A stretch of 64,000 bases of DNA from Eukaryota sp. TZLM1-RC (Eukaryota; Protista; Metamonada: BaSk clade): the NCBI GenBank assembly GCA_040285825.1, contig JAUPSS010000009.1, positions 868,001-932,000 of the forward strand, read 5' to 3'. The notes below the pieces were generated by a model. That model was not told where the DNA came from and made no database searches. It saw nothing but the letters and a program-made list of their open reading frames with translations. Position numbers and translations under genes: made by a program. This document shows positions 8,191-62,221 of the stretch, piece by piece (position 1 is the first letter of the stretch; the number at the start of each line of letters is the position of its first letter).

Positions 8191-8194
8191 AATA

Positions 8195-8980: not shown

Positions 8981-9186
8981 TACGACAAGGTTAAAATTCT
9001 ATGTCTTCATAACCCAAATCAGCCAAGAAGAACTGACTGTAAGTGTCATTAGTTCTGATTTTGTTTTATTAAGTGTTGAAGTTCAATATAACATGTTGAT
9101 GATCGATTCTATTTTTGTATCTGATCAGACACAAACTTCCTGCCTTACCAGAAGAAACCGCTGCTTCAGTTGTTATTAGTCAAGTC

Positions 9187-34530: not shown

Positions 34531-34798
34531 CTAGTTTTACTCATGGCTTAAAACCAATTAATCTGTTTTCGATCACAATTATAGATACTATCACTGAATT
34601 TAACCTCCTTGCTCCCCATTTGTGACAATCACTGTTGCCAAGAATAAATAAAGACATAGAGGATATTTATTGTTGCCCAATGTTATTATGCATGAAAAAA
34701 AAGAAATGATCATCAAAATATAGTTAAAAAGGGTTACTTATTCTATTTTAGAGTTAAATATAACAAAAATGATTAAAAAAGACTATTACAAACTAAAT

Positions 34799-35825
34799 CT
34801 ACTTCTTGCTCTTTGAAGATCGGTATTTTCCAATAACTGTGATAAGAAAAATGAAAAAGTAATAACATACCAACTGCATGGTCACGTTCATATGGTTCAA
34901 GTGGAATCTGTTCAATGGGTTTAAAGTTTTCTTTAACAAGTTTTGAAACTTCCCTGGCAAATACGACTTCAGCAGCGACAGTAGAATCGATACAGTTTGC
35001 TTTAATACTAATGAGGAAAGCACCATCGTGTTTTAAAAAGTGATGAGCATTTATGGCAACAATTCTGGCTTGATCTGGCTGGGCGACGTCTGCGAATATG
35101 GTATCTACCATAGGGACAAGCATTCTGTATTTGTGTGGATGACGGGCATCCTCTACAATGGGAACAACGTTGGTCCTTTGCTGGGCAACACCTATCAGAT
35201 CACGACCAGAACGATGAGAGAATTCAACTGCATAGACCATTCCTTCGGGACCAACGATATCAGCTACATGTGAAACTGTGGTTCCATTAGCGGCACCCAG
35301 GTATAAGACCTTGCTTCCTGGGGCAATATAGATATCATCAACACCTCCAATAACGGTTGCTGCAAGCTTGGATCTAAAGGGGTTCCAGACACGATATTCT
35401 ACCTTCTCTTCATTGACATCGACGGAAATACGCTTTTCACCATAGACGGAAACACCAGGAACAGTGTTAAGAGTGGCCAGGGCGTCTTCTTCTTTTCCAA
35501 CAGACTTGACGACGAAGATACCGGGATGACGATGAGGTTCAACGTGGACTTTGCTACCGCCTCCGAGACCGGGCCTTCCACCACGAGAACCACCGCGGCC
35601 ACCTCTATCACCGCCACGACCGCGACCGCCTCTATCACCACCGCGGCCTCTTCCACCACGGCCACCCCTGTCGCCACCACGGAAGCCGCCTCTATCGCCA
35701 CCACGGAAACCACCACGGCCACCTCTATCACCACCGCGACCGCGACCGCCTCTATCGCCACCACGGCCTCTGCCACCACGACCGCCGCGGCCTCCGCGAC
35801 CGCCTCGAGAATCACCAAAAGACAT
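34799..35825 (-). CDS. NOP1: Fibrillarin (box C/D snoRNP 2'-O-methyltransferase); exons 35825-34871 and 34836-34799
   Basis: N-terminal RGG/GAR domain; [56 protein letters not shown]. Removing a 34-nt intron gives the conserved end [18 protein letters not shown]. Confidence 0.97.
34837..34870 (-). other. 34-nt spliceosomal intron in fibrillarin
   Basis: GTATGTTATTACTTTTTCATTTTTCTTATCACAG; removing it restores the canonical fibrillarin C-terminus. Confidence 0.9.
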
Positions 35826-37880
35826 AGGAAAAGAGTAAGAGTTGTGTAAGAGGAAGTGAGTTTGAATACCTGTTTTTGTTACTAAATTACCCTAGCTTAC
35901 TTCAATTCAATGAATCAACCCACAGGTGAATAAACCCCTTCTTTGGTGTTGTATTGATCATGTAAAATAAAAAGTGTCATTTTGGAAGGGTTTAGTTTGG
36001 CTCCTTTGTTAGTTGATTTGCAGAACAGTAAGCAATCAAATTAAATTAAACTTGACGTTTTGATGGTTAATGAAGCTTTGACTTCAGCAAACGTCCTGTT
36101 TCTCCGAAAAGGTATGGTACCGATGATACGTTGCTGCGGGCAACCATTTCCAGATTCTAAAAGAGAAAAAGGAAACCAATCACCATGTGACATTGTTTAT
36201 CAGCTTGCAAAAATCTGTATTTGAAAATTCAGTAACGACTGTTGAAAGAAGCTTTTGAAAAGAAATATGGTGGTTTTCATCAATATGTTTGCAATTGAAG
36301 TTAGAATGTGTAACAACAAAAGGAGTCAATATTTGAGTAGTAGATAGTTGTGGTAATTCAATAATTGATAATATAATTAAATGGGTAGTTTCCCCAATGT
36401 ATCAATGTATCATTTGTCATTTTTTAACAAAGATGGTTCTTTTTGAAGATGAAAGGTACTCTATTTGAATTTTTGAAGGTGATTAGTATTGAGTAGTTCG
36501 ATCTTACTGCTGCTGATGTGTAGTCATCAACCTCTCCATTTAAAGTAAGTTACAGCAGGTCAGTTTGATTTTGTTACCAGATTGGAGAATCCGATAACAA
36601 GAATTCTTGAATTGATTCATTTACTAACAGTTGACTTTACACCATACCTTCAAATTTCAAGAATTCCGTCCAAGATGTCTAATTCGGTGCAATTACAATA
36701 ACTATTGAATGTTTTGCCAAAAGCTTAATCAATTGCAATAATTCCAACATTGTAATTGCAATTCTGAAATTCAGAAATATGTTTGACTAAAAGTACTAAA
36801 CAGTAATTGAACTTTAACGGTTGAGGAAAGTTTTGAAACATCCTATTAATCTTTAGTTTACTTCAACATTTCGAATCCATTTCCAATTAGAATAACAAAA
36901 ACTATAGTAAAATACAACCACATCAGCTGTAGCAGGAGCTTTTATGTAATGGAGACATTAAATGGAGACATAATTCAATTGTCAATATAGTTGTTAATAC
37001 CATAAATAATTCCTGCATTATTACGCTGTTTCCTGTTATTGACCCCAGATATCAAGTACATAATTATGAAAACTTTGCTTTGGTTGTGACTGAATTGCAA
37101 CACTGTCGTTTTTTTTTCACAAAAAATACATGTTTAAGTAAACAGCAGAGAAGGAGCAGTTTATAGGTAGGTCAGGTGTAGTAAAAGACATATAATGTGA
37201 TAATTTTGCATGTAGTGTTTGGGATTAAGAAGTGTTCAACACCGTGTTCTCCTTTCAAATGATGTTGTTTTCAGCAGCGCCTTTGTTTGAAGAACACTGT
37301 TACAAATATTGTAAATTCGAACATAGCTTGCATCATTGTTTATCACTTTAGATTGAATGCTCGAACCAATTCTTATTGGAGATACTGACACAATTGCTTA
37401 TGTTGCATCATTTACGCAAAAAATTCGCATTGTGAACCCATCTATGAAAGATCAACTTGTGATCAAACTTTGTGTGAAATTGTGTGTGAGTAATGTTGGC
37501 TATGTGTTACTTGATCAGTACAAACTCATGATTACATTTTCAATTGATTTTGTATATATCTGAATTAATTGAGTTTATTAATTTTTAAACATTAAATTGT
37601 AAAAAAAATAAAAAATCAAAAACTATACAATTGAATGTTGTAAACTAATAAAACAAATGCTGTAGGTGAAAGAGTATCGTTTTTGATACGATTTACAGAG
37701 GCTCATATCAAGTTCCTAGTTTCGTATATTGACCAATGGTTGTTTATTACAATCGTTGGTCAAATCTTTAAAGTCCATTTTGGGACAATTAATATAACAA
37801 TTGTGGTGTTAAAGTCTGTGCTATGGTCATTTGAGTAGTCATTGGTATGATTGGTTGAATGGTCATTGGTATGATTAGGT

Positions 37881-40800
37881 CTTTATTGAATTTCTAAAAG
37901 AAAAAGAACGAAACAACTATAAAAGTAAATAAAAAAAACATAAACTACCAAAACCTACGAGCTTCATGAATTCTTTGAAGAATAGAATTAAATGCTTGAT
38001 TACATCTAAAACTATTTTTTCTGAATTATACAACTAATTTCACTGCAAAGCTCAATCCAACCAAAACGTTTAAATGTTTCTTTAGTTTTCTTGTACCAAT
38101 CCCCATGGACATTAAAAACTAAAGGAACAATTTCTGAAATTAAATTGTATTCTTTTAGAATACTGTGTTTCCTTATTTTAGTAGCAAAGGCTTGAGAGTA
38201 AGCATCTTGCCATTTATTTCCAAAACCAAGGAAAGTATGCTATCAATATTATTTGGGAATTTTTTGGTTCTTTTTGTCCTCCTTTTGAACAAAATTTCGT
38301 TAATATTTCCGAAGATTTAACCAATATAGCACCGAGAAATCAGTCATCCGAGAAATTAAGTAAAATTTTTGAAGACAAATGCTTTGACAACAAATGGTCC
38401 AAGGCTTTGTCAGCTTTAAGTCCCGGAGTCAAAGCACCGAACAATGAAAATACAGTAGATAAACTGAAAAAACTTCATCCTTATGAAGACCCTGTTATGG
38501 ATCAAAATTTTTACGGCACATACTGGGAAAATTATCCATTGATGCCATCAGAAGTTTTTTTCGGTTATCAAAAAGAGACCTCGTGGTAAGTCTGCCGGAC
38601 TTTCTGGTATTACTATTGATCATGTAAAAGCCGCGATTATTTCTTCAGAAGATTGCCTTGGTTTATTGACCAAATTTTTCAACCAAATATTATCTGGTCA
38701 ACGCAAGTACCCAGAAGAATTAAGAAGTTCTCGTTTGACTGCACTTGTCAAAAATTCAAAAATGGATGTTCGTCCTATTGCAGTCTCTGAGAGCTTACAT
38801 AATATTTTTTTCTGCGTGTTGCTTAAGCAGGTTCAATGAAAAAGCTAAAAGATTTTATTACCCTTTCAATATGGTATAAATACTACAGATGGAGTCTCTT
38901 CAGCGATTTTTGCTACTGATGTCTTATTTCGTCAAAATGAATCCAATGTTTGTATGTCATTGGATTTTTAGTAATGCTTTCAATTCGCTAAGTCGTCGCA
39001 GTATCCATGGTGCTCTATTGCAATATATGCCAGAATTAATACCATATTTTCAATCAACATATTGCACATATTCTAATTTACATTTTGGTAACAACATTTT
39101 GATTTCATCAAGTGGCGTAAAAGCAAGGAGATCCGTTAGGACCTCTTTTGTTTTGTTTGGCCATTCATCCTATTCTACTGCAAATTCAAGAGATGTTTCC
39201 TTCACTAAAAATGATTGCATATATGGATGATGTTGTGCTTATTGGTGAATTAAATATTGTGAAAAAAAGCAACTGTATGTTTTAAAGAATTATTTACCAA
39301 AATTGGTCTCCGACTTAATTTACTTAAATGTGTTTTGTTATCGAATTCTCCAGTTTCCACAATAATTGATGATATTGAAATTCAAGCCAAATTATATTCA
39401 ATTGATGCTATTCGTCATTTGGGTTCTTTTTTTAGGAAATAATGATGAAATTACCAAAAAAATTGTTTGAAAAGTTGAACTCAATTTCTGACAAAATTGA
39501 CCGAATGATGAATTTAGATATAAAAAAACACATCAAATTTACCATTATAAGACTGTGTTTTTAGTTCCAATTTTAATCATATATTTCGATCTACAAATCC
39601 TCTCGTCACTAGACCTTTGGCTCAAAAGTTTAATGAGTTACGTGCAAAAAGTTCTGTCTCAATTACTGGGATGTAAAATGTTTCAAATTCCAGATCATGC
39701 TTACCTTAGTCCACAATATGGTGGTTTAGGGTGGACGAAGGCTTCTATTCTTACCTCGTGTGCTTTTTGTTGGTGGATGCAGAAATGCAATCTTTGAGTT
39801 CTCCGAAAGATTTGCAGATTGGGAAGATTTATTGATGACAACGCAAAAGTTCCACTGTTTTTGCATTAGATGAAGAAATTTCAAGAATTGACGTGAAAAA
39901 TGGGGTCGATGTTTTCCCCAATCATTCAATGGCAATATTCCAGAAAAAATGTTTTAAATTTGAAGTACACTCTTCGAACATTACAGAAAAAGATTGACTG
40001 GAATGTATGAAAAAGATCTTTATAATAATATTTGCAGCTCGGCTGTTTTTAAATCAAGATCTTCACTCATTGTTATTGGAAAAGGGTGTTTGTGAAAACA
40101 AGGTGTCAGATTCTTCACCTTTTGTAACCATTGTACCACGAAGATTTGGATTGTGTGCTACTAATGAAGCATTTGTAACAAAAATGAGATTATATTTGAA
40201 CATCCCCATTAACCAATTATTATCAAAAGAAAAATGTATTTGTTCGAATTCACCTCAACTCACTTTGCGCCATGCTCTAAATTGCTCTAAATTGATAACT
40301 TATCGTTCTTCATTACATGATGCTGTTAGAGACACTGTTTTCAATATGGCACAAACTGCAAGGATATCGTGTATCAAAGAGCCCCTGCTGAAAGAAACAC
40401 TTTCTCTGAATAATTTTAGTTCTGATGATAGAGGTGATGTATACTGTGATTGGATTGATAATTCTGAAGCTATTGTTGACTTTGTCTCATGTAATGTTGC
40501 AAACGATACTTTGGTTCACAGAAGAAATCTTAATCCTGTGGCTGCTCTGGATTTTAAAGCAAAAGAAAAACATAGAAAATATGATAAAGAAATTGAAGAT
40601 GCAAATATCGATAGAAATACACAGCTGGTTTTTATTGCTTTTCCATTTTCGATAAATGGAAGATTATCAGTTGAAGCAGAAACTTTTTGGATGACTTCCA
40701 AAAAAATGGTGAAAGAAAAAACAATGAAAAGATTTGATATTTTTTTATGGCGTTCACGGATTCAATTTGCCATTATTAATAGATTACCGCGGTTTTTCAA

Positions 40801-43800
40801 TCGAATTAGAGAAGCTTTAGCTAGACAGCAAGCAAATCAAGATTTTGTAGAGGAAATCTTGGTTTAATGATAGTCGTCCCATTAGTTATGATTTAATTTA
40901 ATCAAGTGTGCAAATTCAATAAATTAATATATATTTCCAAAACCACCAACTATTGTAATATCAAACGCAATTTTGGTTTTGGGATCAAATAAATCTAAAT
41001 AAATTTTTTTTAAACCAATTTCAAATTCCTTTTCCTTTTCATATTTGGAGATATTTAATAAATAATCTCTAACTTCATCATGTCTGTTTTTAATGCATCG
41101 TGAAACACCTTTACATTGAAAACTATGGTCTAAACCGAGATTTGTGTAACCACATCTGGGACACTGATGATAAAAATTATTAAAAATTAATCGAAGATTC
41201 AGAAAATAAGACATGAATTCATCAGAAAAAGTGAAATTTGCATTAAAAGGTAATGCATTCAAAAAACTACCTGAAAGTTCAGAACAATTAGCTTCTAATT
41301 GTAATTTTTCCATATCAGACATTGTTTTTTGAAGAGAATTCATTTCATTTTTATAAAATTCCTTTGTTAATTTTGATTGAGAAATTATTATGTCTTTATC
41401 CCAAATAGACTCATATCCTACAAATTGTGGATTTAAAGTAGAATAGATGAGGTCCAAGTCGGAATTTGTGACAAAATTCATCAAATTCAAATCTTTGACA
41501 GAAGAATATAGTGAACATGAATAAGCAATGTTAGCTACAACAGAAAGGTCCTGAAAACCTAGTCCACCTGACTCCAAAGGAATAAAAAATAAACTTTTTA
41601 AATTTAATTTCTTGGAAATTGATAAAATTAAAAAAATTAAAAAATTCAGCTTTCCATAGATGAAAACCAAGAACTGTATTGTGAAATGGAATGGTACGAG
41701 CCCAATACATCAAAATAGAATTAATACATTACTTAAAAAGTAATAATTGATTCTGAATTGGTAGTTCCTTTAGTAAATTTAATTTGGGGATAAGTTCATT
41801 CCTTGTTTTATCATCAAGGAACTGACTTTCATATTCATTTGTACCAATAGGACTACCTAAACACATGAAATCCTCATTATTTTGAAAAATCTTTGTTTTT
41901 GCTAAATTTAAACTTAATCCAATTTTTGAATAATGATTAGATAATTCAACCAACAATTGATCACTATCAATTGATTCATCCAGTAAAATATAAGTATCAT
42001 CTAAATAAGATAATACTGACACACCTTCAATATCACTTAGTAATTTAAGAATTTTAGAAGTTCCCAAACTATATAAAAATGGAGAAATTGGATCTCCTTG
42101 TTTGACTCCAGTCGAAGAAAACACAACATTATCTTCAAAAAATAACTTGGTTTGCCATAGGACCAAGTATAAAAATTAATTAATTGTGGATAATTTTGAA
42201 TTAAATTATGATAGATATGATTTCTACTAATACAATTAAATGCATTAAAAATATCTAAACAAATTACCCTATCATATTTTTGGTGCAGTTTTTTCAATCT
42301 TAATGAATGGATAATTTTCTCTGTACCACTCTTAACCTTTACACCAAATTGACCCAAACTTACAAGTTGAGATGGATCTAAATCAACAGTTAAATATTTT
42401 GATGCGATTCTATAAACAATCTCTGAAATTGCAATCGGACGAACACCATTATTAGGTTTGGTAAGCACAATTAATTTGGAACTTAATAAAATAAATGATA
42501 AAGTATCATCTAAACTTCCATTGATTATGTTTTCAATTAAATAAACTAAAACTTCAGTCAACGCTTCACTGAAGATAGTGGGAAGATGAGTTAAATTGAA
42601 TCCCGATATACCACCAGCTGTTCCTTTTTTAAAATAAAATTTTAAAATAAAATTAACCATTTAGCCTTTTCACGTACATTTAATGAAGAGCTAAGAATAA
42701 AATTTTGTACGTGAAAATAAGTTTTTTTAACAGGTTGTAAACTTAGATTAACACATGCTAAAATTTTGAAAACCTGAATAAATAAATCATCAGGTATTTC
42801 AAATAAATCAGTAAAATCATTACTGTTTGAACAATTATTTTCGAAAGTAGATAAATGTTGAAAATAACTAAAAATATCATCCTTTTGGATGTTTTTATGA
42901 ATTATGCCGAAATGTTTTGATATACCATTTTCAGCGTAAATTCTGTCACAATTATCAATTGGACATACAACAAGTGAATTTGATTGTAAAAATTCATCAT
43001 TAAAAAATTCGACTTCATGAATATTTCTATTATTTAAATGTTTTAATAATCTTTGTTGATCTTTGAAAGGGCCAGCTCCACATTGGCATTTATGAATAAA
43101 ATTATTTTCAGTGTTAAATATAACTTCTGATGAAAAAGTGGGTAAAGCAATACTTTCATCTAAAGTGTCAAATAAAGGCAAATAATTAGCACTATTGGAA
43201 TTAAGACCAGTTTTAGCCCACTGATCTGCAATTTCATTTTATTATCATTATTGTGTGCCTTTACCCAATTGAAAATAAATTGAGTATTTAGTTTCTGTAA
43301 CAGTATTTGAATCAAATTAACTTTCTTCTTAATAATATTGACTGTAGCGTTAAATTGACCAGATAACCATTTAATAACATTTTGACTATCAGTGAAAAAT
43401 TCAACTCTTTTAGGTTTGTATTTTAACTTAAGGAGAGATAATAAACCCAAAATAATAGCAGATAACTCAGCAGAGTTGATGGTAGCTTTATCTAACACTT
43501 GACCATATTGATTGAAAATTAGTTTATCCTTTATGTAAAGCTGACATGAACATCCTGCTAAACGTTTAGCGATACCATTATCATCAATAGTGGTTGCTGA
43601 ACCATCTGTATAAATAAAGATGATTGGCGGTTCTGATAAGAGAGAAGATGAGTGTTCAGAAGAGTCTTGTGAACAAGAATGTCTAGATTCGTAATGTGAA
43701 GATGATTTTTCCAAAACTGTATTTTTTGTGTTTGCAGTAGAGTGCAAATTTAAGAAAGAAGAGTTATCAGAAACACTAGTGGAAGACGTAGGGGGTAAAA

Positions 43801-44115
43801 TTGGAGGTTGAGGAGGGCGAGAAGGAAGGGAAGTAGATAAAGATCTGATGTGATTAGAGGTATTGACAAGTGGCACATCCGATATTTTCTTCTTAGGGGG
43901 ATCAAAAATACGTGCGTCAAGTGTCGATGAACGTGGCAGAGAACTTCTTCGTGGTTGACCACCTAATAAACCATTAATTAGTTTTGAGGTTGGTTTTGAG
44001 CTCGAGCAAGACATGCTACGAGTTCTTCTTGTCTCAACCATAAGAAGAAATTTAAAGCTTTGAAGTAGGTTGGAGGATGGTAGGTTATTGAATGATGATA
44101 GGGAGGAAAAAAAAA
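37881..44115 (-). mobile_element. Full-length RNase H-containing CRE-like non-LTR retrotransposon (family D, ~3.5 kb without the nested insert)
   Basis: 12-bp TSD GTATGATTAGGT at 37869-37880 and 44116-44127. Coding from ATG 44041: disordered N-terminus, RNase H (YTDGS, NSAEL, TDSQ, WVKAH, NEIADQWAK), two C2H2-like fingers, RT (VRPIAISE, LDIFNAFN, GVKQGDPISP, YLDD), CCHC knuckle (CPRC..H..C) and RLE (RHDEVRD, FDITIV), continuing at 38228 past the nested insert. Confidence 0.9.
38229..40931 (+). mobile_element. 5'-truncated family C CRE-like retrotransposon nested antisense in the family D endonuclease
   Basis: 14-bp TSD TATTTCCAAAACCA at 38215-38228 and 40932-40945; RT motifs (DVRPIAVSE, LDFSNAFNS, QGDPLGP, AYMDD); RLE (CICS..HALNC, HDAVRD, RGDV, VDF, KHRKY). 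Confidence 0.9.
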
Positions 44116-44240
44116 GTATGATTAGGTGAGTTGCATGTAGTCCTTATGTACTAGATGTGATCAACTTGTGATCAAACTTTGTGTGAAATTGTGTGTGAGT
44201 AATGTTGGCTATGTGTTACTTGATCAGTACAAACTCATGA

Positions 44241-46576
44241 TTTTTTTAAAAAAATTTAATTTTATTCTAAACCTATAAATCAACATCTAAAAAATCCATC
44301 TCTCCCAAAACAAAAACACTAGATGCAACTCTCTCATAGTGAGATCCAAGAGAAAGCAAAGCATCAGAAACCATCTTCAACATCCCCTTAAAAATAGAAA
44401 ACACAATTCTATTTTGCCAAAACAATCTGTTGAAATTTCTGCCAGTTCTTCTCTTTACAATCATTTCAAAATCATCCAAAAAACGTAAAGCAGTTGGTGC
44501 AAGTGAACCAAAAGGGAAAATACAAATGGATACAAATTGTATTTTTGCATGCTGTAGACTGGCCAATTTGGACAAAGGTTCATTGTATTTTTTGAATTTA
44601 AAATTTTCAGCATTTGAAAGGGGATTATGAATTTCAGAATTAACAAGTCTTTCATTTGAGGCATTACAAGGATCAACAGACATTACATCCAATAAAATGA
44701 AGCTTCCATCTAATCCAGGTAATATGACATCACCTCTATTATTCTGATGAAAATCATTTTCAGCATCAAACAGATTTGACAACAAAGGTTCCAAGAAGGA
44801 TTCAATTCTATGAGATTTACACATACAATATAACTGGTCTCTTACAGCATCATGAACCTTGCTTCTAAAAGTAATAAAATGTTTACAATTTAACAAATGA
44901 GTAGTTGTAATTTCTCGAGAACATTTACAAATTAAATTATGAGGTAAATTATCAGGCCAGATAAAGGAACGAAATCTCATATTCAGAGTCCAAGCAGAAT
45001 CGGATAAGAGAGTACCATAAACTTGTGGAATTGTTGTTACTAAGGCAGAAGAAGTACTGTCACACATATCTTGTAAAAGATTTGCAAAAGCGGGATTCTT
45101 TTTCTTGGCCAAGCCAAGTCTAACATCAAAATCCAAGCTTTCAAAAATCTTTGACAATTTTTGTTGAAGCTTTTTACAGCAAAACTGTAAATTAAATAGA
45201 GATCGGTTTGGAATTTCTTGAATTGATTGAGGAAAACATTTGGTCCAAATTTGTGGCGGTAATTTTTCAAGTTCACAAGATAACTCATACAAATAGGGAC
45301 TACAATTGGGGACTAACAGATGAGAATCATCAGGAAATCTACGAGAAAATTCATAAATAAAATTTTGCCACCACCCAAGAATGCTGATTGACACAAAATT
45401 GAAGATTTAGTAAAACCAATACCACCCAAATTTGCTGAAGAAAATAAATGGCTTTTCAACATTCCTGGTTCTACATCCAATAAATCAGCAAAAATTCTGT
45501 TCTCAATGAATTAAAAGATAGACAAAAATCTAATGCTATGGAAGGAGCACAAGATCTCAAAATGTGGGTTATTCTCCCAGTGTAGCAAATTTTAAGCATG
45601 AAAAATTTAATATGCTTTTCTATATCTAAAGAAGAAATTGAATCAAGTTCAATTTTCATTTTTTCCAAAATAACTTGCAATTCATTCTGAATTTGAGGCA
45701 CATTTCCTAACCAACAACCAAGGAACTTAAAAGCATCACTACTATAATTAGTAAAAGGGATAATAGAATCGTTTATCAGGAGGTCTTGAGCAGAAGAGCC
45801 AATCAGAAGGCATTTGCTGGCATTAAGATGAAGCCCAATATTTTCATATGAATCGGCAATTTCTTGAGCAACCAATTCTAGTAAATCAAATGAACCAATC
45901 AAGGATATATCATCCATATAAGCAACTATTTTTATAGAAGGGTATTTTTGCTTAATGATATTTAAAGTTTTGTGAATAGCTAAACAAAACAATAATGGGC
46001 CTAAAGGATCTCCCTGCTTCACTCCAGAAGATGATTTAAGACCAAATGAATTAAAAATTAAATCTGATTCTTTCCCATAAAAATGGTAGAAAAAACTCGA
46101 TAGCTCAGGAAAATCAGATTTAATAACTTCAAAAATTGCTTCTCGCTTTACAGAATTAAAAGCATTTTTAAAGTCGAGATTAAAAATAAAATTATTTTCC
46201 TCTGCATTAAAAAAGGTATCAGAGGCAATAGCAGCAACAGAAGCACCATCAATTGTTTTGATTCCAAATTGATGAGGATTCAAAAATGTAGAAGCTTTGT
46301 CTTTGACACGATCGAAGACAATTGATGCTAGCAAACGAGAAGGGATTCACCAACAGCAATTGGGCGTATTCCATCAGGTTTGATTCCGTTTCCAGGCTTT
46401 ACTAAAGCAATCAGACGTGCTGCGAGTAATTCAAATGGAGGATTAATTTTCAAAACAATCAATTGTTGAAAATAGTGGGCTAGATCATCAGCAATTTCGG
46501 GAGCACTGGAACACGCTATTTTTAACAGATCAAAAGAAATTCCAGATGGGCCTGCTGCTCATCTGCTCATCTGCTC
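44241..46576 (-). mobile_element. 5'-truncated family A CRE-like retrotransposon inserted in the 462-bp repeat
   Basis: TSD AACTCATGA(TT) at 44232-44240 and 46577-46585; A-tail at the left junction; RT (LDFKNAFNS, GVKQGDPLGP, YMDD) and RLE (CKC..HLLNC, HDAVRD, RGDV, LLDV, KFKKY). Confidence 0.92.
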
Positions 46577-47047
46577 AACTCATGATTACATTTTCAATTG
46601 ATTTTGTATATATTTGAATTAATCGAGTTTATTAATTTTTAAACATTAAATTGTAAAAAAAATAAAAAATCAAAAAGTATACAATTGAATGTTGTAAACT
46701 AATAAAACAAATGCTGTAAGTGTAAGAGTATCGTTTTTGATACCATTTACTGAGGCTCATATGAAGTTCCTAGTTTCGTATATTGACCAATGGTTGTTTA
46801 TTACAATCGTTGGTCAAATCTTTAAAGTCCATTTTGGGACAATTATTATAACAATTGTGGTGTTAAAGTCTGTGCTATGGTCATTTGAGTAGTCATTGGT
46901 ATGATTGGTTGAATGGTCATTGGTATGATTAGGTGAGTTGCATGTAGTCCTTATGTACTAGATGTGATCAACTTGTGATCAAACTTTGTGTGAAATTGTG
47001 TGTGAGTAATGTTGGCTATGTGTTACTTGATCAGTACAAACTCATGA

Positions 47048-48994
47048 TTTTTTTTTAAAAAAATTTAATTTTATTCTAAACCTATAAATCAACATCTAAA
47101 AAATCCATCTCTCCTAAAACAAAAACACTAGATGCAACTCTCTCATAGTGAGATCCAAGAGAAAGCAAAGCATCAGAAACCATCTTCAACATCCCCTTAA
47201 AAATAGAAAACACAATTCTATTTTGCCAAAACAATCTGTTGAAATTTCTCCCAGTTCTTCTCTTTACAATCATTTCAAAATCATCCAAAAAACGTAAAGC
47301 AGTTGGTGAAAGTGAACCAAAAAGGGAAAATACAAATGGATACAAATTGTATTTTGCATGCTGTAGACTGGCCAATTGGGACAAAGGTTCATTGTATTTT
47401 TTGAATTTAAAATTTTCAGCATTTGAAAGAGGATTATGAATTTCAGAATTAACAAGCCTTTCATTTGAGGCATTACAAGGATCAACAGCCATTACATCCA
47501 ATAAAATGAAGCTTCCATCTAATCCAGGTAATATGACATCACCTCTATTATTCTTATGAAAATCATCTTCAGCATCAAACAGATTTGACAACAGAGGTTC
47601 CAAGAAGGATTCAATTCTATGAGATTTACACATACAATATAACTGGTCTCTTACAGCATCATGAACCTTGCTTCTAAAAGTAATAAAATGTTTACAATTT
47701 AACAAATGAGTAGTTGTAATTTCTAGGTAGAATGTATTTTTTGAATTAGCACACTTAATTAAATTAAATCATAACTAATGGGACGACTATCATTGAACCA
47801 AGATTTCCTCTACAAAATCTTGATTTGCTTGCTGTCTAGCTAAAGCTTCTCTAATTCGATTGAAAAACCGCGGTAATCTATTAATAATGGCAAATTGAAT
47901 CCGTGAACGCCATAAAAAAATATCAAATCTTTTCATTGTTTTTTCTTGCACCATTTTTTGGAAGTCATCCAAAAAAGTTTCTACTTCGACTGATAATCTA
48001 CCATTTATCGAAAATGGGAAAGCAATAAAAACCAGCTGTGTATTTCTATCGACATTTGCCTCTTCAATATCTTTATCATATTTTCTATGTTTCTCTTTTG
48101 CTTTAAAATCCAGAGCAGCCACCGGATTAAGTTTTCTTCTGTGAACCAAAGTATCATTTGCAACATTACATGAGACAAAGTCAACAATAGCTTCAGAATT
48201 ATCAATCCAATCACAGTATACATCACCTCTATCATCAGAACCAAAATTATTCAGAGAAAGTGTTTCCTTCAGCAGGGGCTCTTTGATACACGATATCCTT
48301 GCAGTTTGTGCATATTGAAAACAGTGTCTCTAACAGCATCATGTAATGAAGAACGATAAGTTATCAATTTAGAGCAATTCAGAGCATGGCGCAAAGTGAG
48401 TTGAGGTGAATTCGAACAAATACATTTTTCTTTTGATAATAATTGTAATTTCTCGAGAACATTTACAAATTAAATTATGAGGTAAATTATCAGGCCAGAT
48501 AAAGGAACGAAATCTCATATTCAGAGTCCAAGCAGAATCGGTTAAGAGAGTACCATAAACTTGTGGAATTGTTGTTACTAAGGCAGAAGAAGTACTGTCA
48601 CACATATCTTGTAAAAGATTTGCAAAAGCGGGATTCTTTTTCTTGGCCAAGCCAAGTCTAACATCAAAATCCAAGCTTTCAAAAATCTTTGACAATTTTT
48701 GTTGAAGCTTTTTACAGCAAAACTGTAAATTAAAAAGAGTTCGGTTTGGAATTTCTTGAATTGATTGAGGAAAACATTTGGTCCAAATTTGTGGCGGCAA
48801 TTTTTCAAGTTCACAAGATAACTCATACAAATAAGGACTGCAATTGGGAACTAACAGATGAGAATCATCAGGAAATCTACGAGAAAATTCATAAATAAAA
48901 TTTTTGCCACCACCCAAGAATGCTGATTGACACAAAATTGAAGATTTAGTAAATCCAATACCACCCAAATTTGCTGAAGAAAGTAAATGGCTTT
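47048..48994 (-). mobile_element. Second family A copy at the same position of the next repeat unit, 5'-truncated, with a nested family C fragment
   Basis: 3' junction gatcagtacaaactcatga|TTTTTTTT as at 44240; differs from copy 1 by several substitutions (AEDDFHKN vs AENDFHQN, MAVD vs MSVD). Confidence 0.9.
47725..48442 (-). mobile_element. 5'-truncated family C copy nested in family A
   Basis: 11-bp TSD TTGTAATTTCT at 47714-47724 and 48443-48453; near-identical to 40215-40920. Confidence 0.9.
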
Positions 48995-52021: not shown

Positions 52022-55000
52022 CTGCCTTTTCCTCTCTTTCGAGCGACGAGCCCTGGAAGCTCTAGTCACAGGAGGTGAACTAATGGAATTATTACGCTTC
52101 TTGGGAGGAGCGGATTTAGTACGGTGACGTGCTTTTGAAGTCTTGATAAAGTCTTTATACGCGGCAGTATTTTGGACTGTAGACACATGCTCAGTGGTGA
52201 TCTCTTTTCCAGGCCATTGCACTTGGTAAAAGTCACCGTCCTGACTGAGCACTTTTTCAATGATGTGTTCTTCGACATCACCTGAGCGACCCAGGAGTGG
52301 AACTCATCGTTGGTGGGCAAGCTGGAGTGCCAGGGTGCTAAATGTTTGACGCTAGCTTGGACAATCGTACCTGTGCAGAGATTCTTAATATTCACAGACG
52401 AATTGGATACGATTTCAGTAATTAGGAAGGGTCCTGAATATTCTCCATGAAGCTTAGCGGAAGAGCCAGATGCTCTCAATACCAATTGACCAACTTCAAA
52501 AGGGTTTGGAGTTGACGATCTAGTTAGCTTGGAAGCTTTGGAAGCTTGATGGTGTGCTGCCTTTTCCTGTTTCTCTTTCAATCTTCGAAATTTAGATTGA
52601 ATTTCTTGAATAAAAGATGACTCAGACGTCGAGCTTTCAATGATTTCAAGAATTTTGCCAGGGTCTGATCTGGGAGACACATCTGAGCCAAAGATCACTT
52701 GGTATGGGGTTTGGTTGGTAATTGTGCTCTTGGAAGAGTTGATCAATAATTGCACATAAGGCAAGTATTCAGACCACACATCGTAGGCGTTGAAGTCTAC
52801 CAGCAATTTCCTCAGGTTTTGCAGGATGTCTCTGTGTCGGCGCTCTACCAAGCCGTTGGACTGAGAAAACCTAGGAATTGACTTTGACACCTCTATGCCC
52901 AAAAATTTACTTAATTCGTCAAAGACAGCCTTGGAAAATTCAGGTCCATTATCGCTGTGTATTTGAAATGGAATACCAAAGGTGGCACAGACTTTCCAAA
53001 TTAATGCATCTGCAGTAAGATTAGCATTTATCTCTTTTAAGGGCACGATGATTGTGAACCTAGAGAAGCTGTCAATAAATACGAGGATGTATTTGTAGCC
53101 TTCTTGATCTTCTGGTAGAGAACCAATAACGTCGGCGTTGACGCGAGCAAAAGGTCTGTCAGCCCACAATGAACCGGTTGGGGGAACATGCAGTTTGGGA
53201 ACTGGCTTTGTTTTCTGACAGGAGGGGCATTCTTGGACGTGCATATTCATGTCGGTGAGCATGTTTGGCCACCAATAATCGCTGTTCCTGAGCTTGTTCA
53301 GGCTTTCAGCTTTGCTTGGATGGCCTCCTTGCAGAAGTCCATGCAACAAGTTAAGGGTGTCCTTAATGAGTGATTTGGGAATCACTATCTTGTTGTCGTG
53401 CATCATAAATAAATCAAGGTTATTGTTATGACCACAGTTGTTGAAAGAGGGGTCTTTGGAAGCTATGGCAAGCTTCTGTTCGGACCTAATCCTACAGAGC
53501 CATGGCTCGAAAATAGGCAGGTCGTTGGAACATCGTTCTCTGATGACCATGATACGTTCGAAGTTGTTTAAGTCTTCGATGTAGTATCTTTCATTTTCTG
53601 TTCCATCAATTTTATCGATGTAAAATATTGGATGAAAATTTGGAGATATTTGATGGGACAAATGATTGATCTCTTGATGGTCTATAGGCGGAACTATTCG
53701 AGACAACATATCAGCCCAGAAGTTATCTTCCCCTTTGGTATGTACCAAATCAAAGCAGAATTCAGAGAATATGGGTAACCATCTTGTTACAATTCTGTTC
53801 TTCTCAGGAGCCGTGAACATGTAGGTAAGGTTTTGATGGTCTGTGAATATAACCAGTTTCCTTCCTTTCAAGTAGTTTTCAAAACCACTTTGAGTTAACA
53901 TGAGCAGGATGGCATAGAGTTCCATTTGGTTTGTCGGCCAGTTCTTTTGCGAGTTGGTTAACAACCGGCTGAAGAAGCTGATAGGCCTACATTTCCTGTT
54001 GATCAGGGGGGTACCGGGGTCGTCGACTTGTTCCATTTGTTCCCATATGACGCCGTCTACAGCAATGTCGGATGCATCGCAACTAATTAAAATTTGGTTT
54101 TCCAGCGGAGGTAAGCTGAGCGGCATGTGCTTCGCTATCAGTTGTTTGAACTTTTGAAGGAGTCCGTCGTGCATGTCGGTCCATTGAAGGCGTTGCGCGC
54201 GGGGTTTGGGTTTAACGTTGGAGTTATTTCCATCCTTCTTAGTCAATCTGATGATAGGAGCGATGAGCTCTGATACCTGAAAAAGCCATTCTCTAATGAA
54301 GTTGACTGATCCTACGAGGCTGCGGACGTCTTTGATTGTCTTTGGTCTAGGTAGATTCAGCAAAGATTCAACGCGAGTGGGATCGATAGTCCGTTGTTTG
54401 TTTTGGAAAACACTGCCCAGTATCTTGATTGGGTGTCTGGAAGACACGAAATGGCACTTTGGAAGTCCCAAGGAAACTCTTTTGCATCTGGCTTGATCAA
54501 GGACGCGACGGAGGCGTTCAATGAATTCGTCAAAGGTTGAACCCATGATTATGATGTCATCTATGTAAATGAAGACACCGTCTCCAGAGAAGATGTCAGC
54601 CATGACGTTTTGGAAAACGGCTGGGACATTCTTTAGGCCAAAAGCTGCACGTTTGAACATGATGCTTTTTGCCAGGAATGCTCAGGGCTGTTTTTCTGCC
54701 AATCCTTTTCAGCAATCTTGAGTTGCCAAAAGGCTTTGGGAAGGTCAAGGGTGCCTATGTAGTTCGCTTGGGAGAGAAATACCAGCACATGGGAGATCCT
54801 TGGAAGGTTGGGCTCAACAGGAATGGTGTTGGCGTTGACTCCGTCCTTGCCACTATAATCACCAGTAAGGCGGGGCTTACGGTGATCTGGGTAGACCACT
54901 AGACAGACAGGGGAGCTGAACTCATGGTTCGATGGGACAGCGAATCCTGAGTCTACGAGTTCGTCGAAAATTTGGTTAGCGACCTCTAGCCTGGCTGGAT

Positions 55001-55733
55001 TCAGGGTCCTGGGGGGTCTTCTAACTCTGACGTCTTCATTGTAGAAGTTGATTTCCATGGGAGGGCAATCAATACCTTCAGCATGAGGCTTGAGGGTAAA
55101 AACGTCTTCGAACTCTTTCAAAGTTTGAAGTAGGGACTTCTTGAAATGGTCGTTGTCGAGGTTGATGGTACAACCAGATGAGTTGATGTGTTCCAACCAA
55201 CGTGTGGAAACGTTGACGACTTCTGAAGCTTGCGATATTCGATGGTCGAATTCGGCTTCAGGTAATAGTAGTGTACGACAGGCGTCGTCCATTCTAATGT
55301 AAATGCCCTTGTTGTTCATCAGCCCAAGGTGACTCAACAAGTCAGCACCAATGAGAATGGTCTCATGTCCAGGAACGATGCTGAACATGTGTTTCACGTG
55401 TACAATCTGGGTAACACTACCTAGTCTAATGCTAAGGGTTCCAGAAGCAGTTCCAAGGGACTGTGAGGTAGTTCCATCAGCAATCTTGTATGATATGGTT
55501 TCGTTGGAACGCCCCATGTTACAGTTACTGATGACGTCTTCCGTGACTACTGAGCATGTTGCACCAGAGTCAATTATGCCTTTAACTTCGACATTGTTGA
55601 TCAAGAAGTTTAATTGTAGGCAGTTGTGATTCATGGATTGTACCATAAAAATTGTATCACAATCATGTCCATTTAAGTCGGCTTGTTCTGAGAAGAAGTT
55701 AGCCTGACTGTTGGGTATTTTGGTAGTTTCCAA
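52016..55733 (-). CDS. Gypsy pol (protease, RT, RNase H, integrase, chromodomain-like tail), frameshifted in this assembly
   Basis: IIDSGAT; LDLPKAFWQ, FGLKNVP, YIDD; CDASD, ELYAI, TDHQNL, ADMLSR; HHCC, SDNG, VERRH, GPF; after a frameshift EEHIIEKVLSQDGDFYQVQWPG. Confidence 0.92.
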
Positions 55734-55919
55734 GTTGGCAAGTGGATTGATTAGAGAATCTTTCCATGCTGAACTTTCTGTGTGTGGTTGTGTTGTTGTA
55801 GGGGGTATGGTTTCTAAAGTACATAAATAGTGACGGGAACGTTTATTGTAAGAAGAGCCTCTGCCTCTGCCGCGAGTACCTCTTCGACTACGGAAACCAG
55901 AACCTCTAGAACTTCTACC

Positions 55920-58900
55920 TCAAGCTTGTTGTTGAGCTTGTTGCTCTCTCCATTTCTTGCTCCTTTGGCAGTCTTCACTGGGACACCTTTCGGTCGGATG
56001 GCCCTTTTGCTTACAGAAGTTGCATTGGACATCAGCGGCCTGGGCAGACGATTGTGGTAGGCTTCCTCCTCTCTTACTTTGTTTGGGGCGTTTACCTGGA
56101 CCAGAACCTCGTGATCTGGGGATGTCAGGTGGGGAGGGAACGACCATGGGAGGTCGGCGAGAGGCCTGCTGGTGATTTACTTGGTTCTGATAGGTGAAAT
56201 CGACATGGTTTAGCTGTTCCATGAACGATCTGGCGTTACAAAAATTCTAGTATTCAATTTGGAGAACACTAAAGAATTCACCAAGGGTGTGACCATCAGA
56301 TGAGTAATGAGAGGGAGAGGACCAGATCCTGAGGAGTCTGTTCCTGATAGGGATAATTCCTACGCTTTCTAGGACATGAGTAGCGACTACCCAGTCTGAA
56401 AGTCTATCCGCTGGAGGGTGGAGCTTATGGAGAATGTTCTCAATTGATGAGAGATGCCCCTAAACTCTTGGATGGCAGTGAAGCGAGTCAGAACTCTGCC
56501 AATGTTGACCATGAAGTCAATCCATCTATTGCCATAATCTCTTTCCGACCAGTCCATGTTAGTTGCGAGGAGAGCTCGATTAGCCTCATCCAGTCTGCTG
56601 AATTGGGTTCTTCTCAGAATTTGAGCCCAAATTATGCGTTCGTCTCTTGAGGTAGGAACCGTGGGAGAAGACATAGCTAGGTGAGCACCTTGATATCTTA
56701 ACGCATTTAGCACCTCAGGGGTGACACATTCAGCGAGGCCTCGGGGGTTGATCCTCATGGCTTGACGGAACAAGTCCCATTCGTGAACTGGTTCTCCAGT
56801 GATGTTACCAAAATACTCATTTGTCGATGGTTGGGAACCTTCTCTAGCTAGTTCTAATTCTTCACGTAGTCTGGCAACTTCGTTGGCTAGAGCTATCTGG
56901 GCTGGATCCTCAACGTTGCCTCTTGTTTCTCTTAGGACTCGGTCGGTACGACTCCAGAGAATGAATTTGTTGACAAACTTCAGAAGTTTATCAGCGTCTC
57001 TCAAATCGGAAGCTTCAAGATATGGACGTTTAAGGCGGTCCCTACGTCTGTCATCTCGATCTCTTGATCCAATCATTGAAGAAAGGAGAAGGCTACTTTC
57101 GTATGTGCCCGAGAAGGGTGATTGATGAGAGGAAATAGAGGTTGTTGAACCTGTCGTGGAAGGTGTAGGTTGGGGTTGAGGGGCTCGACTAACGGGAGTG
57201 ATGGGAGCAGGTACTGCATCAGAAGATGTGATGGGAGTGGGTGATTCACTGCTCACAGTGATGGCGTCGTCGTCGGCTTGTTCCATAGCAGATTGGTTGG
57301 GATTAGGGGTTTCCGTGGTAGAAAATGAATCAGTTTCCATAGGAGGTTGTGATGATTCAGAAGCTTGAGCGGAGGAAGATGGAGCTTCACTCCGTTGAGG
57401 TTGGGGTTGGGCAGAAGGTTCTGTCTCTTCAATCTGGGCTGGGACCTGATAAGAAGAGATCGCTGGTTGGACCAAGCGTGTCTTTTCAATTCGACCTTCA
57501 ACCATGACCCATTTTAACATCCTGGATTCTATGCATCCAGGGAAAACCGTGACGAGCTGGAGAGTTCTTTGAAGATTGCCCGATCTTCTGTGGTCAGGAC
57601 CACAATATGAAGCTATATGGTCAGGACGTCTGTCGTAAAGGAAGAGTCTTTCACCATATGTGGTTTCGGTAAACCACCACCCTGTTCTATAATCTCTGTC
57701 GATGAGGATATCGAGAGATGCGTTGTACCCAGGGCTGAACCTAGGGTATGGGCAAGGGTTGTGAACATTTATGAAGAGGTTGTCTTCTTCTCCAGCGAAG
57801 CGTCTGAATACTCCTTCTCGAGTAGTTCTCATGAACCTAACTCCGGGTCTTGGTTCATAAGTTGGTTCAGGGTCATTCCTGGAGGTTTCTGGGGTGATCC
57901 TTTCATCGGAAAGAAATGGACCAATTCTGGGAGAGATCCATAATCCTAAGTCGTTCTCGACTTTGGGACCGTAGAAAGGAGGCCGTTTATTGCTCATTTC
58001 CGTGGGAGGGATGGCTTCTGGATCCCCTGGAATGACTCGTGTGTCCCTATATCTAGCGTAAGGGTTGTGCTGACGGGAAGCACCATGATAAACACTTGAG
58101 CTAGCGTAGGAGCTAGTTTGAGAAGGGGTAAGTTGAGCAGGTGTAGAGGATGTTCCTCTTCTAGCTTCAATCTCTCTGTCCAATCTTTTTCTGTGTTCCC
58201 AGTTTCGTTCTTCTTGGAGAAAACGCTCTATATATTCTTTAGAGACCTCACCAGGAATTTTGTCAATTTCAGAAGAAGGTGCCGTGGGAGGGACCTGATG
58301 TTGAGGTAGAGGGGAGAATTCCTTGGGAGGTTCCTCGTACTCAACCAAATCTGAAAAGATTTGTTCGTACCTTTTCCTTTGCTCTTCGGAAAGATACGAA
58401 GGAAGGTTAGAAAGGCTAGGAATGGGATCACTAGCCTGGTGAGGGGAAACAGATAGATTATTAACTCCACTAACTGTTGAAGTCAGAGGAGACCCTGAAG
58501 CTGGAACAGCAGGATTTTGAATGTTCCTCCTAACAGTTGGAACTGGAGGGAGGAGCTGTTGAGAATGAGAGGGTGGAACCTCAGAACTAGATGGAAGGGA
58601 TGAAAATGGTACTTAAATGGCCTTCTTAGAGGAGGAAGAAGGTTGGTCTTCCAATCCTTCCTTTGCGGTGAGAAAAGGTTGAACAGTCTCTCTGCTCTGA
58701 GTAGAAGGTGAAGGTGGTACTTCAGAGCTTCTTTCAGGGAGGGGAGAAGATGGGACTTCAGATGCCCTCAATTGCGAAGGAGGAAGAGGAGCAACGAAAT
58801 CCTCTACATCCTCGTCGTCGTAGAAGACCAACGAAGGACTTATTCCTTCCGAAGGAACAGAATCCTTGGGAGGGTTGTCTCCTTCCACAGGAACGGATTC

Positions 58901-59270: not shown

Positions 59271-62221
59271 CTATGAGATTTACACATACAATATAACTGG
59301 TCTCTTACAGCATCATGAACCTTGCTTCTAAAAGTAATAAAATGTTTACAATTTAACAAATGAGTAGTTGTAATTTCTCGAGAACATTTACAAATTAAAT
59401 TATGAGGTAAATTATCAGGCCAGATAAAGGACCGAAATCTCATATTCAGAGTCCAAGCAGAATCGGATAAGAGAGTACCATAAACTTGTGGAATTGTTGT
59501 TACTAAGGCAGAAGAAGTACTGTCACACATATCTTGTAAAAGATTTGCAAAAGCGGGATTCTTTTTCTTGGCCAAGCCAAGTCTAACATCAAAATCCAAG
59601 CTTTCAAAAATCTTTGACAATTTTTGTTGAAGCTTTTTTACAGCAAAACTGTAAATTAAATAGAGATCGGTTTGGAATTTCTTGAATTGATTGAGGAAAA
59701 CATTTGGTCCAAATTTGTGGCGGTAATTTTTTTCAAGTTCACAAGATAACTCATACAAATAGGGACTACAATTGGGGACTAACAGATGAGAATCATCAGG
59801 AAATCTACGAGAAAATTCATAAATAAAATTTTTGCCACCACCCAAGAATGCTGATTGACACAAAATTGAAGATTTAGTAAAAACCAATACCACCCAAATT
59901 GGCTGAAGAAAAATAAATGGCTTTTCAACATTCCTGGTTCTACATCCAATAAATCAGCAAAAAAATTCTGTTCTCAATGAATTGAATGAACGACAAAAAA
60001 ATCTAATGCTATGGAAGGAGCACAAGATCTCAAAATGTGGGTTATTCTCCCAGTGTAGCAAATTTTAAGCATGAAAAAAATTTAATATGCTTTTCTATAT
60101 CTAAAGAAGAAATTGAATCAAGTTCAATTTTCATTTTTTCCAAAATAACTTGCAATTCATTCTGAATTTGAGGCACATTTCTAACCAACAACCAAGGAAC
60201 TTAAAAAAACATCACTACTATAATTAGTAAAAGGGACAATAGAATCGTTTATCACGAGGTCTTGAGCAGAAGAGCCAATCAGAAGGCATTTGCTGGCATT
60301 AAGATGAAGCCCAATATTTTCATATGAATCGGCAATTTCTTGAGCAACCAATTCTAGTAAATCAAATGAACCAATCAAGGATATATCATCCATATAAGCA
60401 ACTATTTTTTTATAGAAGGGTATTTTTTTGCTTAATGATATTTAAAGTTTTGTGAATAGCTAAACAAAACAATAATGGGCCTACAGGATCTCCCTGCTTC
60501 ACTCCAGAAGATGATTTAAGACCAAATGAATTAAAAATTAAATCTGATTCTTTCCCATAAAAATGGTAGAAAAAAACTCGATAGCTCAGGAAAATCAGAT
60601 TTAATAACTTCAAAAATTGCTTCTCGCTTTACAGAATTAAAAGCATTTTTAAAGTCGAGATTAAAAATAAAATTATTTTCCTCTGCATTAAAAAAGGTAT
60701 CAGAGGCAATAGCAGCAACAGAAGCACCATCAATTGTTTTGATTCCAAATTGATGAGGATTCAAAAATGTAGAAGCTTTGTCTTTGACACGATCGAAGAC
60801 AATTGATGCTAGCAAACGAGAAAGAGATTCACCAACAGCAATTGGGCGTATTCCATCAGGTTTGATTCCGTTTTCAGGCTTTACTAACGCAATCAGACGT
60901 GCTGCGAGTAATTCAAATGGAGGATTAATTTTCAAAACAATTAATTGTTGAAAATAATGGGCTAGATCATCAGCAATTTCGGGAGCACTGGAACACGCTA
61001 TTTTTAACAGATCAAAAGAAACTTCAGATGGGCCTGCTGCTTTCCCCTTTGGCAATTTTTGAATAGCTTTAAGAACTTCAATTGCAGTAATAGGATTTTC
61101 AATCCAAAAAGGACACACTTCAGGCTTGCTGCACTTGAAATTTTCTTGAGGATGCAACTTTTGAAGTTTTTCAAGGGTATCAGAGTTTGCATCAGCCAAA
61201 GAAGAGGAAAACAAAGACTGCTTTGCGGCACCATAACGACCACGTAAGCACAATTTTCGGCAAATTTTTGATTTTACAATTTTTCTATTTCCAAATTTTT
61301 TCTTAAAACAATTTTTGTTTTTTCTAGCAAAAATATTTCCAGAAGGATGAAAGATTCGACTTATTATTTTTTTCAATTCAGAAGTAAAATTTCTCATTTC
61401 CATTGAGAAGGGGATTGTGCTGGCGGGACTTATTTCTACTGGGATCCGGATCGGGGTCTTACGGTATCAACGGCTTTACAATTCGTACAAAACAGAAGTT
61501 TTTCGACCATTTCGTGAATCTGCAACATCCTTTTTGCAAAATGGACAACAAAAAAATCACTGTTTTTCAGAAGGGGAAGAAGAGGGAACACTAAAAGCAT
61601 TTAACTGTTGATCGTCAGAAACATTATTTTTCAGCACCTTTCACAACGGCAACAGCTGGAACAGAACATTTGAGAATTTGTTGAGCAGATTTTTAATTCA
61701 AATTCTCTTTTTTTGTTTTTCAGGGCACGTTCTCGAATTATGACCACTGATACCACAAATCGAACATTTTTTAGAACCTTTTAATGGCAGTGGTTTCATT
61801 TTTTCAGTTCTTTCAATTTTGTCAATTTGTGAGTTAAAAGTAGAAAGAGACTTTTGACTTTTTGCAGTTTCAGCTGGAGAAAACAAATTTCGAGAAACGG
61901 AGTTGTTAATAGAACGCGCAACAGAACGCAAGGAACGTAATGGTGGTTTTTCTGTGTTTTTTCTGGTACAATGATCAGTTTTTGAATGAAAATTTTTTTG
62001 AGATGAATTTCGAGCATAGCTTGTATTGTGGGGAGAGTGGGGAAGTGGAGAGGATGAGCTTGATCTGACTGGTAGAATCTTTGCTTGGGCGTTCCAATCA
62101 GTATCAGAGTCACTATCAGCCAAAGGCATCGTTTTGACAGAGAAACAGTACGACTTTGACGCCTTGACAGAAAGTGAAATATGAAAGGGTTGACTAAAGG
62201 AGGGAGAAAAAAAAAGGGAGG

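Follow-up and report, generated by a model that had tools for sequence, protein, structure and literature searches.

An RNase H domain lying in front of the reverse transcriptase (RT) of an R2-like retrotransposon raises two questions: whether the domain belongs to the element, and where it came from. The case examined here is a 64,000-nucleotide stretch of DNA (the window; assembly GCA_040285825.1, contig JAUPSS010000009.1, positions 868,001 to 932,000 of the forward strand) of strain TZLM1-RC, the type strain of the free-living anaerobic metamonad Skoliomonas litria (PMC11603281). At 37881-44115 the window contains a retrotransposon without long terminal repeats (LTRs), here named element H. 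We interpret H, at a probability of roughly 85%, as a site-specific element of the restriction-like endonuclease (RLE) or R2-like type that encodes a single polyprotein with an RNase H ahead of its zinc fingers and RT. An earlier annotation made from the letters alone (the sequence-only reading) had proposed an element of this kind, and its claims are taken up below where the evidence bears on them.

Structure and classification of element H

H occupies 3,518 bp of the minus strand, in two pieces separated by a nested insertion. The sequence-only reading had treated the interval as one compact element; this had to be abandoned, since the interval also holds a 2.7-kb plus-strand element of another RLE family (family B, which has no RNase H). 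The H copies at two further loci (L002 and L003) are contiguous across the family B insertion site. Twin priming was considered for this tail-to-tail pair and rejected, because it would put the 3' ends outward; a simple nested insertion fits. Read on the minus strand, the listing of open reading frames (ORFs) gives five consecutive pieces of H from 44041 to 40924, which encode, in order, a Ser/Pro-rich region with the RNase H, 179 amino acids (aa) with two C2H2-like patterns, two RT pieces (PF00078), and a CCHC knuckle with the first half of the RLE; the C-terminal half of the RLE was found at 38228-38017 on the same strand. The resulting order (Ser/Pro-rich N-terminus, RNase H, two C2H2-like fingers, RT with a YLDD motif, CCHC, RLE) agrees with that originally described. 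The finger region reached only E = 0.16 against Pfam, and the fingers are recognized as patterns.

H has the composition of an RLE-type (R2-like) element: an RT followed by a CCHC knuckle and a PD-(D/E)xK endonuclease in one ORF, with no apurinic/apyrimidinic endonuclease (APE), for which Pfam gave no match in the window or in the H ORFs of L003. All search queries were natural uninterrupted ORFs or pieces of them, and no joined sequence was used. A profile built from the intact 808-aa ORF of the L003 copy and 23 homologues matched solved R2 proteins over the entire RT-to-RLE span (E = 1e-54), whereas LINE-1 ORF2 matched this profile in the RT part only; in the alignment (A4) the CCHC, RH, D and K columns are conserved. 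Together with the Pfam RVT_1 match, this bears out the assignment to RLE-type non-LTR elements. Database homologues of the RT-RLE module are all at most 30% identical to H, and no close relative of the lineage turned up among 1.84 billion representative proteins. No RNase H was found in these homologues by precomputed Pfam annotation and a scan of eight long ones; one long homologue carries an OTU protease. The closest (P0043; 1,410 aa, 27% identity) is encoded on metagenome contig ERZ21736675:ctg10131c of the European Nucleotide Archive (ENA; locus L005), where its copies lie head-to-tail with a 5,148-bp period, which suggests another repeat-targeting RLE element.

Further copies of H and the reading frame

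A search for copies with the endonuclease ORF recovered two proteins from GCA_040285825.1 whose loci hold further copies of H. The loci compared, all from this assembly, were the window, L002, L003 (the start of contig 7) and L006/L007. The L003 copy is 99.3% identical to the window copy at the nucleotide level. In L003, an ORF at 9048-10166 covers the N-terminal region and a complete RNase H and continues directly into the fingers, reading KAHNNDNKNEIADQWAK without the frameshift of the window copy, and a second ORF at 10284-12710, in the same frame, encodes an intact 808 aa comprising an RT N-terminal extension, RT, thumb, CCHC and RLE. What lies between the two ORFs is no more than a -1 and a -2 indel, spaced by about 55 nt, and the window copy is open there. 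Taken together, the two 99.3%-identical copies leave no stretch of the ORF closed in both, and the coding region of H is a single reading frame.

The frameshift that the sequence-only reading had placed near 43240 is real, being a 1-nt difference in an A run, but it is not the only lesion. The window copy is dead: it carries the nested insertion, an internal deletion of about 448 nt, four small indels and one stop codon. By alignment arithmetic, an intact H would measure about 3,969 bp, with a 74-nt 5' untranslated region (UTR), an ORF of about 1,276 aa and a 64-nt 3' UTR. The proposed element of about 3.5 kb bounded by a target-site duplication (TSD) is therefore correct for the window copy, with its 12-bp TSD, but short of the intact length of about 3.97 kb. 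As the 99.3% identity indicates recent copies, the H family is young, and the window copy is a decayed member of it.

Target site and integration footprint

H sits inside a satellite with a unit of about 455 bp, which occurs in the window at 37450-37878, 44116-44257 and 46577-47066 and forms long arrays in L002 (1-8865), L003 (1-13852) and L006/L007, at or near contig ends. In the window, L003 and L002, the three loci at which 3' junctions were read, H ends in ...GAAATTCAATAAAG straight against A(T/C)CTAATCATAC, with an identical 12-bp TSD and no A tail, as had been noticed for the window copy. A fourth, truncated copy lies in L006. The 5' ends differ: the window copy is full length, the L003 copy lacks 175 nt and the L002 copy comprises the last 896 bp only. 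From the fixed 3' junction, the 12-bp TSD and the variable 5' truncation it follows that H inserts at one nucleotide position of the satellite by sequence-specific target-primed reverse transcription without an A tail. The differing 5' ends at a common target also show that each copy arose by its own insertion event and that the RNA template had the RNase H in it already. The satellite target has no detectable RNA gene: no Rfam family reached its gathering score in the window, the satellite unit gave nothing significant at E ≤ 5, neither U2 small nuclear RNA (snRNA) nor spliced-leader (SL) RNA was matched in the window or the unit, and no tRNAs were found in the window.

The same satellite hosts three RLE families at three sites, namely A(T/C)CTAATCATAC for H, AGTAAATCGT for a family designated H2 and AATCATGAGTT for family B. 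H2 (P0042) is a sister family, 48 to 50% identical to H in the RLE, of which at least 29 fragments are annotated; every H2 copy seen is truncated at the 5' end, and the TSD of the family (AGTAAATCGT) marks a satellite site distinct from that of H. A diverged relative of H had been reported at 16480-17420 of the window. It is indeed related, as a relic of H2 at 71 to 92% aa identity to P0042 and 39 to 50% to H, but it consists of the RLE part only and has no N-terminal part. In L006, identically 5'-truncated H2 fragments of about 579 bp recur at 3735-7390 and 11459-13057 with a period of about 1,025 bp; insertion-bearing satellite units seem to have been co-amplified there, which looks like unequal crossing-over and not repeated insertion. 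At 44258-46576 of the window, a 5'-truncated family B element lies in the satellite, and its 5' junction has extra GAGCAGAT-like repeats that are absent from the target.

The RNase H domain

Pfam recognizes the RNase H (PF00075) in the window ORF at 43160-44041 (E = 4.5e-11) and in the unbroken L003 copy (E = 1.4e-15, profile positions 4-140 of 141). Its catalytic set is complete, with D in YTDGS, E in SAEL, D in TDSQ, H in KAH and D in NEIAD, so that the sequence-only reading was right to call all catalytic positions readable. In an alignment with the best database matches (A1), the D, E and D columns are invariant, and the His and final Asp are placed as in the majority "WVKGH...NExAD" type, with the H-x9-D spacing of Escherichia coli RNase HI; the proposed His-containing domain is thereby upheld. 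An AlphaFold2 (AF2) model of the domain has a predicted local distance difference test score (pLDDT) of 89, and its top Foldseek matches (4e19, 3hst, 3aly and 4h8k; template modeling [TM] score 0.69 to 0.77) are protrusion-less enzymes, the best superpositions being with Halobacterium RNase H1, the N-domain of Rv2228c, Sulfolobus RNase HI and LC11. The segment from DSQ to WVKAH is 38 aa long, as in protrusion-less types, and from this short segment we infer that the basic protrusion is missing. No hybrid-binding domain was matched by Pfam in the N-terminal ORFs of H. Judged from the model, the RNase H of H is of a compact type, nearest to archaeal and Rv2228c-type RNases H1. The label "cellular-type" holds only with a qualification, as the fold is compact and has neither the basic protrusion nor a hybrid-binding domain.

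No close relative of the domain emerged from sequence searches. With phmmer against the 1.84 billion representatives, only its own ORF fell below 1e-10; besides this there were about 39 weak stand-alone RNases H, the best E value (5e-8) being a repeat-protein artifact, and no match was to an RT-linked RNase H. A homologue search with the RNase H ORF found only itself, the sole record of this ORF is from contig JAUPSS010000009.1 of GCA_040285825.1, its neighbors in the atlas are small stand-alone RNases H, and sequence-only searches of the PDB with single pieces were uninformative.

RNase H in a sister family

A further family in this genome, H3 (L006/L007), has an RT about 34% identical to that of H and an RNase H among its N-terminal fingers. 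In one H3 copy, N-terminal fingers precede an RNase H that is complete (PF00075 E = 2.8e-15) and shares about 31% identity with that of H; a finger follows. A related copy, which shares the 5' 427 nt at 87% identity, encodes in one frame a finger, a C-terminal remnant of the RNase H (GHVGHYRNQMADKLA), two fingers and the RT. The His position is kept in the RNases H of both families. In the RT tree, H and H3 are sisters (ultrafast bootstrap [UFBoot] 98 / SH-like approximate likelihood ratio test [SH-aLRT] 95); when either is left out, the remaining one attaches to the same group without RNase H, and family B, from the same genome, is placed elsewhere. A single origin of the H and H3 RNases H is not rejected (approximately unbiased test, p-AU 0.84). 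The RNase H is thus shown to be a trait of the H family and of a deep sister family, H3.

As an observation on this locus, the RNase H region of an H3 element in L007 (about 4600-8500, minus strand) is interrupted by a tandemly duplicated unit of about 1.9 kb (99.8% identity) that includes an ORF resembling His-Me finger homing endonucleases (PF05551 E = 1e-13; e.g., L007:7595-7882) and a 200-aa Ser/Pro/Thr-rich ORF.

Comparison with known elements

In all oomycete families of Utopia, the RNase H lies upstream of the RT, a position that was called unique (Kojima and Jurka 2015, PMC4640811), and these findings were confirmed by Ustyantsev et al. (PMC5348765). The Utopia RNase H is of the archaeal type (aRNH), in which Arg replaces the His; the target is the U2 snRNA genes, and Utopia families from outside the oomycetes have no RNase H (PMC4640811). 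Oomycete Utopia and H resemble each other in having a single ORF with N-terminal zinc fingers, an RNase H before the RT and a C-terminal CCHC and RLE, and in inserting site-specifically into a multicopy repeat. Compared through the published description of Utopia, H differs from it in RNase H type (His with E. coli-like H-x9-D spacing, against archaeal with Arg), in target (the satellite of about 455 bp, against U2 snRNA genes) and in host (metamonad, against oomycete). When the literature was searched for further RLE elements that have an RNase H before the RT, only the Utopia papers came up, and the literature on FoTeR elements leaves RNase H unmentioned. The position of the domain, which the sequence-only reading had held to be unusual, is so only in a relative sense, given the oomycete Utopia precedent (PMC4640811); an RLE clade with a similar architecture had thus already been catalogued, which goes part of the way toward a finding that the sequence-only reading had named as refuting it.

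R2 (R2Bm, R2Tg) resembles H through the profile homology that spans RT, linker, CCHC and RLE, and also through N-terminal fingers, the lack of an A tail, a fixed 3' junction, 5' truncations and target-primed reverse transcription. It differs in having no RNase H, in carrying a Myb motif (Pfam found none in the N-terminal ORFs of H) and in targeting 28S rDNA instead of a satellite. GilM and GilT ("Genie") of Giardia, another metamonad, are early-branching RLE-type long interspersed elements (LINEs) situated in tandem or subtelomeric repeats; to our knowledge, no RNase H has been reported for them. In the CRE clade the target is a spliced-leader gene or a telomere; at the target of H, the window and the satellite unit gave no match to SL RNA. 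Dualen elements carry an APE endonuclease as well, and their RNase H is downstream of the RT, in contrast to H, where no APE was detected and the RNase H is upstream. Dualen/RandI nevertheless shares with H the presence of both an RLE and an RNase H in one non-LTR element (cited in PMC4640811).

Origin of the RNase H

For the origin of the domain, we lean slightly toward an independent gain, by which the metamonad clade of H and H3 would have acquired a compact His-type RNase H upstream of the fingers separately from Utopia and kept it while the RTs diverged to about 34% identity. The donor could be something other than the host RNase H1, either another retroelement, be it an LTR element or a LINE of the I, Tad or Loa groups, or a gene of prokaryotic or phage origin, and this is a serious contender at somewhat less than even odds. 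The nearest neighbors by sequence and by features are short stand-alone RNases H, the atlas clusters are labeled bacterial or phage, and the domain is unlike eukaryotic RNase H1 in having neither a hybrid-binding domain nor a basic protrusion; on the other hand, none of the matches is strong (E about 1e-6 at best, identity no higher than 36%), and the RNase H tree, built from sequences that did not include Utopia, LINE, LTR or host references, has no resolved branching.

It is unlikely that H is an element of the Utopia/NeSL clade whose upstream RNase H stems from the same acquisition as that of oomycete Utopia. Such descent would account for the common layout of fingers, upstream RNase H, RT and CCHC-RLE (PMC4640811), for a fold nearest to archaeal-type RNases H1 without the basic protrusion, and for several Arg-type enzymes among the best sequence matches of the domain. 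It fits poorly with the His and H-x9-D spacing in place of the Arg of aRNH, with a satellite target that has no Rfam match to U2 or another RNA, with the lack of any RNase H-bearing RLE protein when homologues were sought in databases for the RNase H and for the RT-RLE module, and with the non-oomycete Utopia families that have no RNase H (PMC4640811).

A chance chimera, in which this copy alone gained an RNase H (for instance when the template was switched at the 5' end to a host RNase H mRNA, or through juxtaposed insertions), is very improbable. It drew on the single locus visible at first and on the frameshift needed in the window copy to join RNase H and fingers. However, L003 holds an independent insertion at the same target, with a different 5' truncation, and this copy carries the same RNase H, likewise in frame; the different 5' ends also argue against the L003 and window copies having arisen by segmental duplication of a single insertion. 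In addition, the frame of the finger ORF encodes the final catalytic helix of the RNase H, and the sister family H3 has an RNase H among its N-terminal fingers too. The domain is accordingly element-borne, with two independent in-frame copies in H besides H3.

Several points weigh against the interpretation of H and its RNase H preferred here. None of the H copies examined is fully intact, the ORF being open in every part across copies and in no single copy throughout; both long copies carry indels, mostly in homopolymers. Some of these indels may be assembly errors, because the S. litria assembly is Nanopore-based, with Illumina polishing (PMC11316075). Owing to rearrangement of the region, the H3 copy with the complete RNase H shows no physical link between this domain and an RT in the DNA examined. 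The branches of H and H3 are long and their composition biased. The activity of the RNase H in H and its role in integration, as set out below, are inferred only.

Possible mechanism and implications

In the mechanism that we propose from the sequence, the fingers and the RLE would recognize the satellite site, the RLE would nick the bottom strand, and the RT would use the resulting 3'-OH as primer and its own RNA, starting at the ...AAUAAAG 3' end, as template. Cleavage of the top strand would fall 12 bp downstream, and the two nicks, 12 bp apart, are predicted to flank ATCTAATCATAC. The built-in RNase H may then strip the RNA from the cDNA:RNA hybrid and let second-strand synthesis proceed. 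R2 elements manage RNA removal without an RNase H of their own.

R2-like elements serve as the model system for target-primed integration at specific sites, and they are under engineering for gene insertion. They normally have no RNase H, and the clearance of the RNA template before second-strand synthesis is a weak point in the mechanism. H is a second RLE lineage with an RNase H before the RT, apparently separate from Utopia and with an RNase H of another type, in a deep-branching free-living metamonad, with recent copies and a precise satellite target staggered by 12 bp. The distinct RNase H type, the host, the recent copies and the defined target make possible a comparative test of whether an RNase H encoded by the element is of help in this kind of integration. 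If the gain was independent, an "RNase H first" arrangement would be recurrent and therefore probably advantageous for R2-like target-primed integration, and H would be a natural R2-like enzyme with a built-in RNase H that can be assayed. The families described here are the first transposable elements documented for the barthelonid/skoliomonad group; its genome paper makes no mention of retrotransposons (PMC11316075).

Coordinates and other features of the window

Table 1. Coordinates of element H, its lesions, its target-site duplication and related elements in the window
Feature	Position	Strand	Remarks
Relic of family H2	16471-17411	-	Degenerate, 5'-truncated, RLE part only; outside satellite
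Left copy of 12-bp TSD	37869-37880		GTATGATTAGGT
3' UTR of H	37881-38016	-	Ends ...AATTCAATAAAG directly on target; no A tail
C-terminal half of H RLE	38017-38228	-	…GFGN|KWQDAY…K..K(H/Y)…; ORF end shortened by +1 indel
Lesion, +1 nt	about 38020		Alignment to L003
Nested family B RLE element	38229-40931	+	5'-truncated, no RNase H; splits H; 14-bp TSD at 38215-38228 and 40932-40945
Thumb/linker, CCHC knuckle and first half of H RLE	40932-41728	-	CCHC at 41113-41163; RLE motifs RHD..., D, DITIV; +1 indel
Lesion, +1 nt	about 41599		Alignment to L003
RT (PF00078, YLDD)	41729-42660	-	4-nt deletion and in-frame TAA
Lesion, in-frame TAA	41729-41731		TAT in L003; alignment to L003
Lesion, -4 nt	about 42145		Alignment to L003
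Site of internal deletion relative to L003	42635-42646	-	About 448 nt; RT N-terminal extension with conserved ...KLHP... motif gone
Lesion, internal deletion of about 448 nt	about 42640		RT N-terminal extension lost; alignment to L003
C2H2-like finger 2 (C-x4-C-x11-H-x4-H)	42897-42965	-	Pattern level only
C2H2-like finger 1 (C-x-C ... H-x6-H)	43017-43088	-	Pattern level only
RNase H domain (DEDHD)	43212-43639	-	YTDGS, SAEL, TDSQ, KAH, NEIAD; 1-nt indel in A run
Lesion, -1 nt in A run (the frameshift noted earlier)	about 43240		Alignment to L003
ATG and Ser/Pro-rich N-terminal region	43640-44041	-	About 134 aa, probably disordered
5' UTR of H	44042-44115	-	T9 first, then C-rich tract; 5' end full-length
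Right copy of 12-bp TSD	44116-44127		GTATGATTAGGT on the plus strand; in the satellite of about 455 bp

Several nested or truncated family B copies lie between 58 and 64 kb of the window. One of them (60531-62129, minus strand) carries, ahead of the RT, an additional ORF of its own (61698-62129) that encodes a CCHC zinc knuckle, with weak Pfam matches, and it has no RNase H. The block at 52066-58348 (minus strand) encodes an LTR-retrotransposon pol (protease, RT, RNase H and integrase) with a 653-aa ORF upstream, and its GC content is 43 to 48%, compared to about 33% elsewhere in the window. Host genes include an intronless fibrillarin with an N-terminal RGG repeat (34773-35825; PF01269 E = 3e-101) and a 796-aa RCC1-repeat protein (9115-11505).

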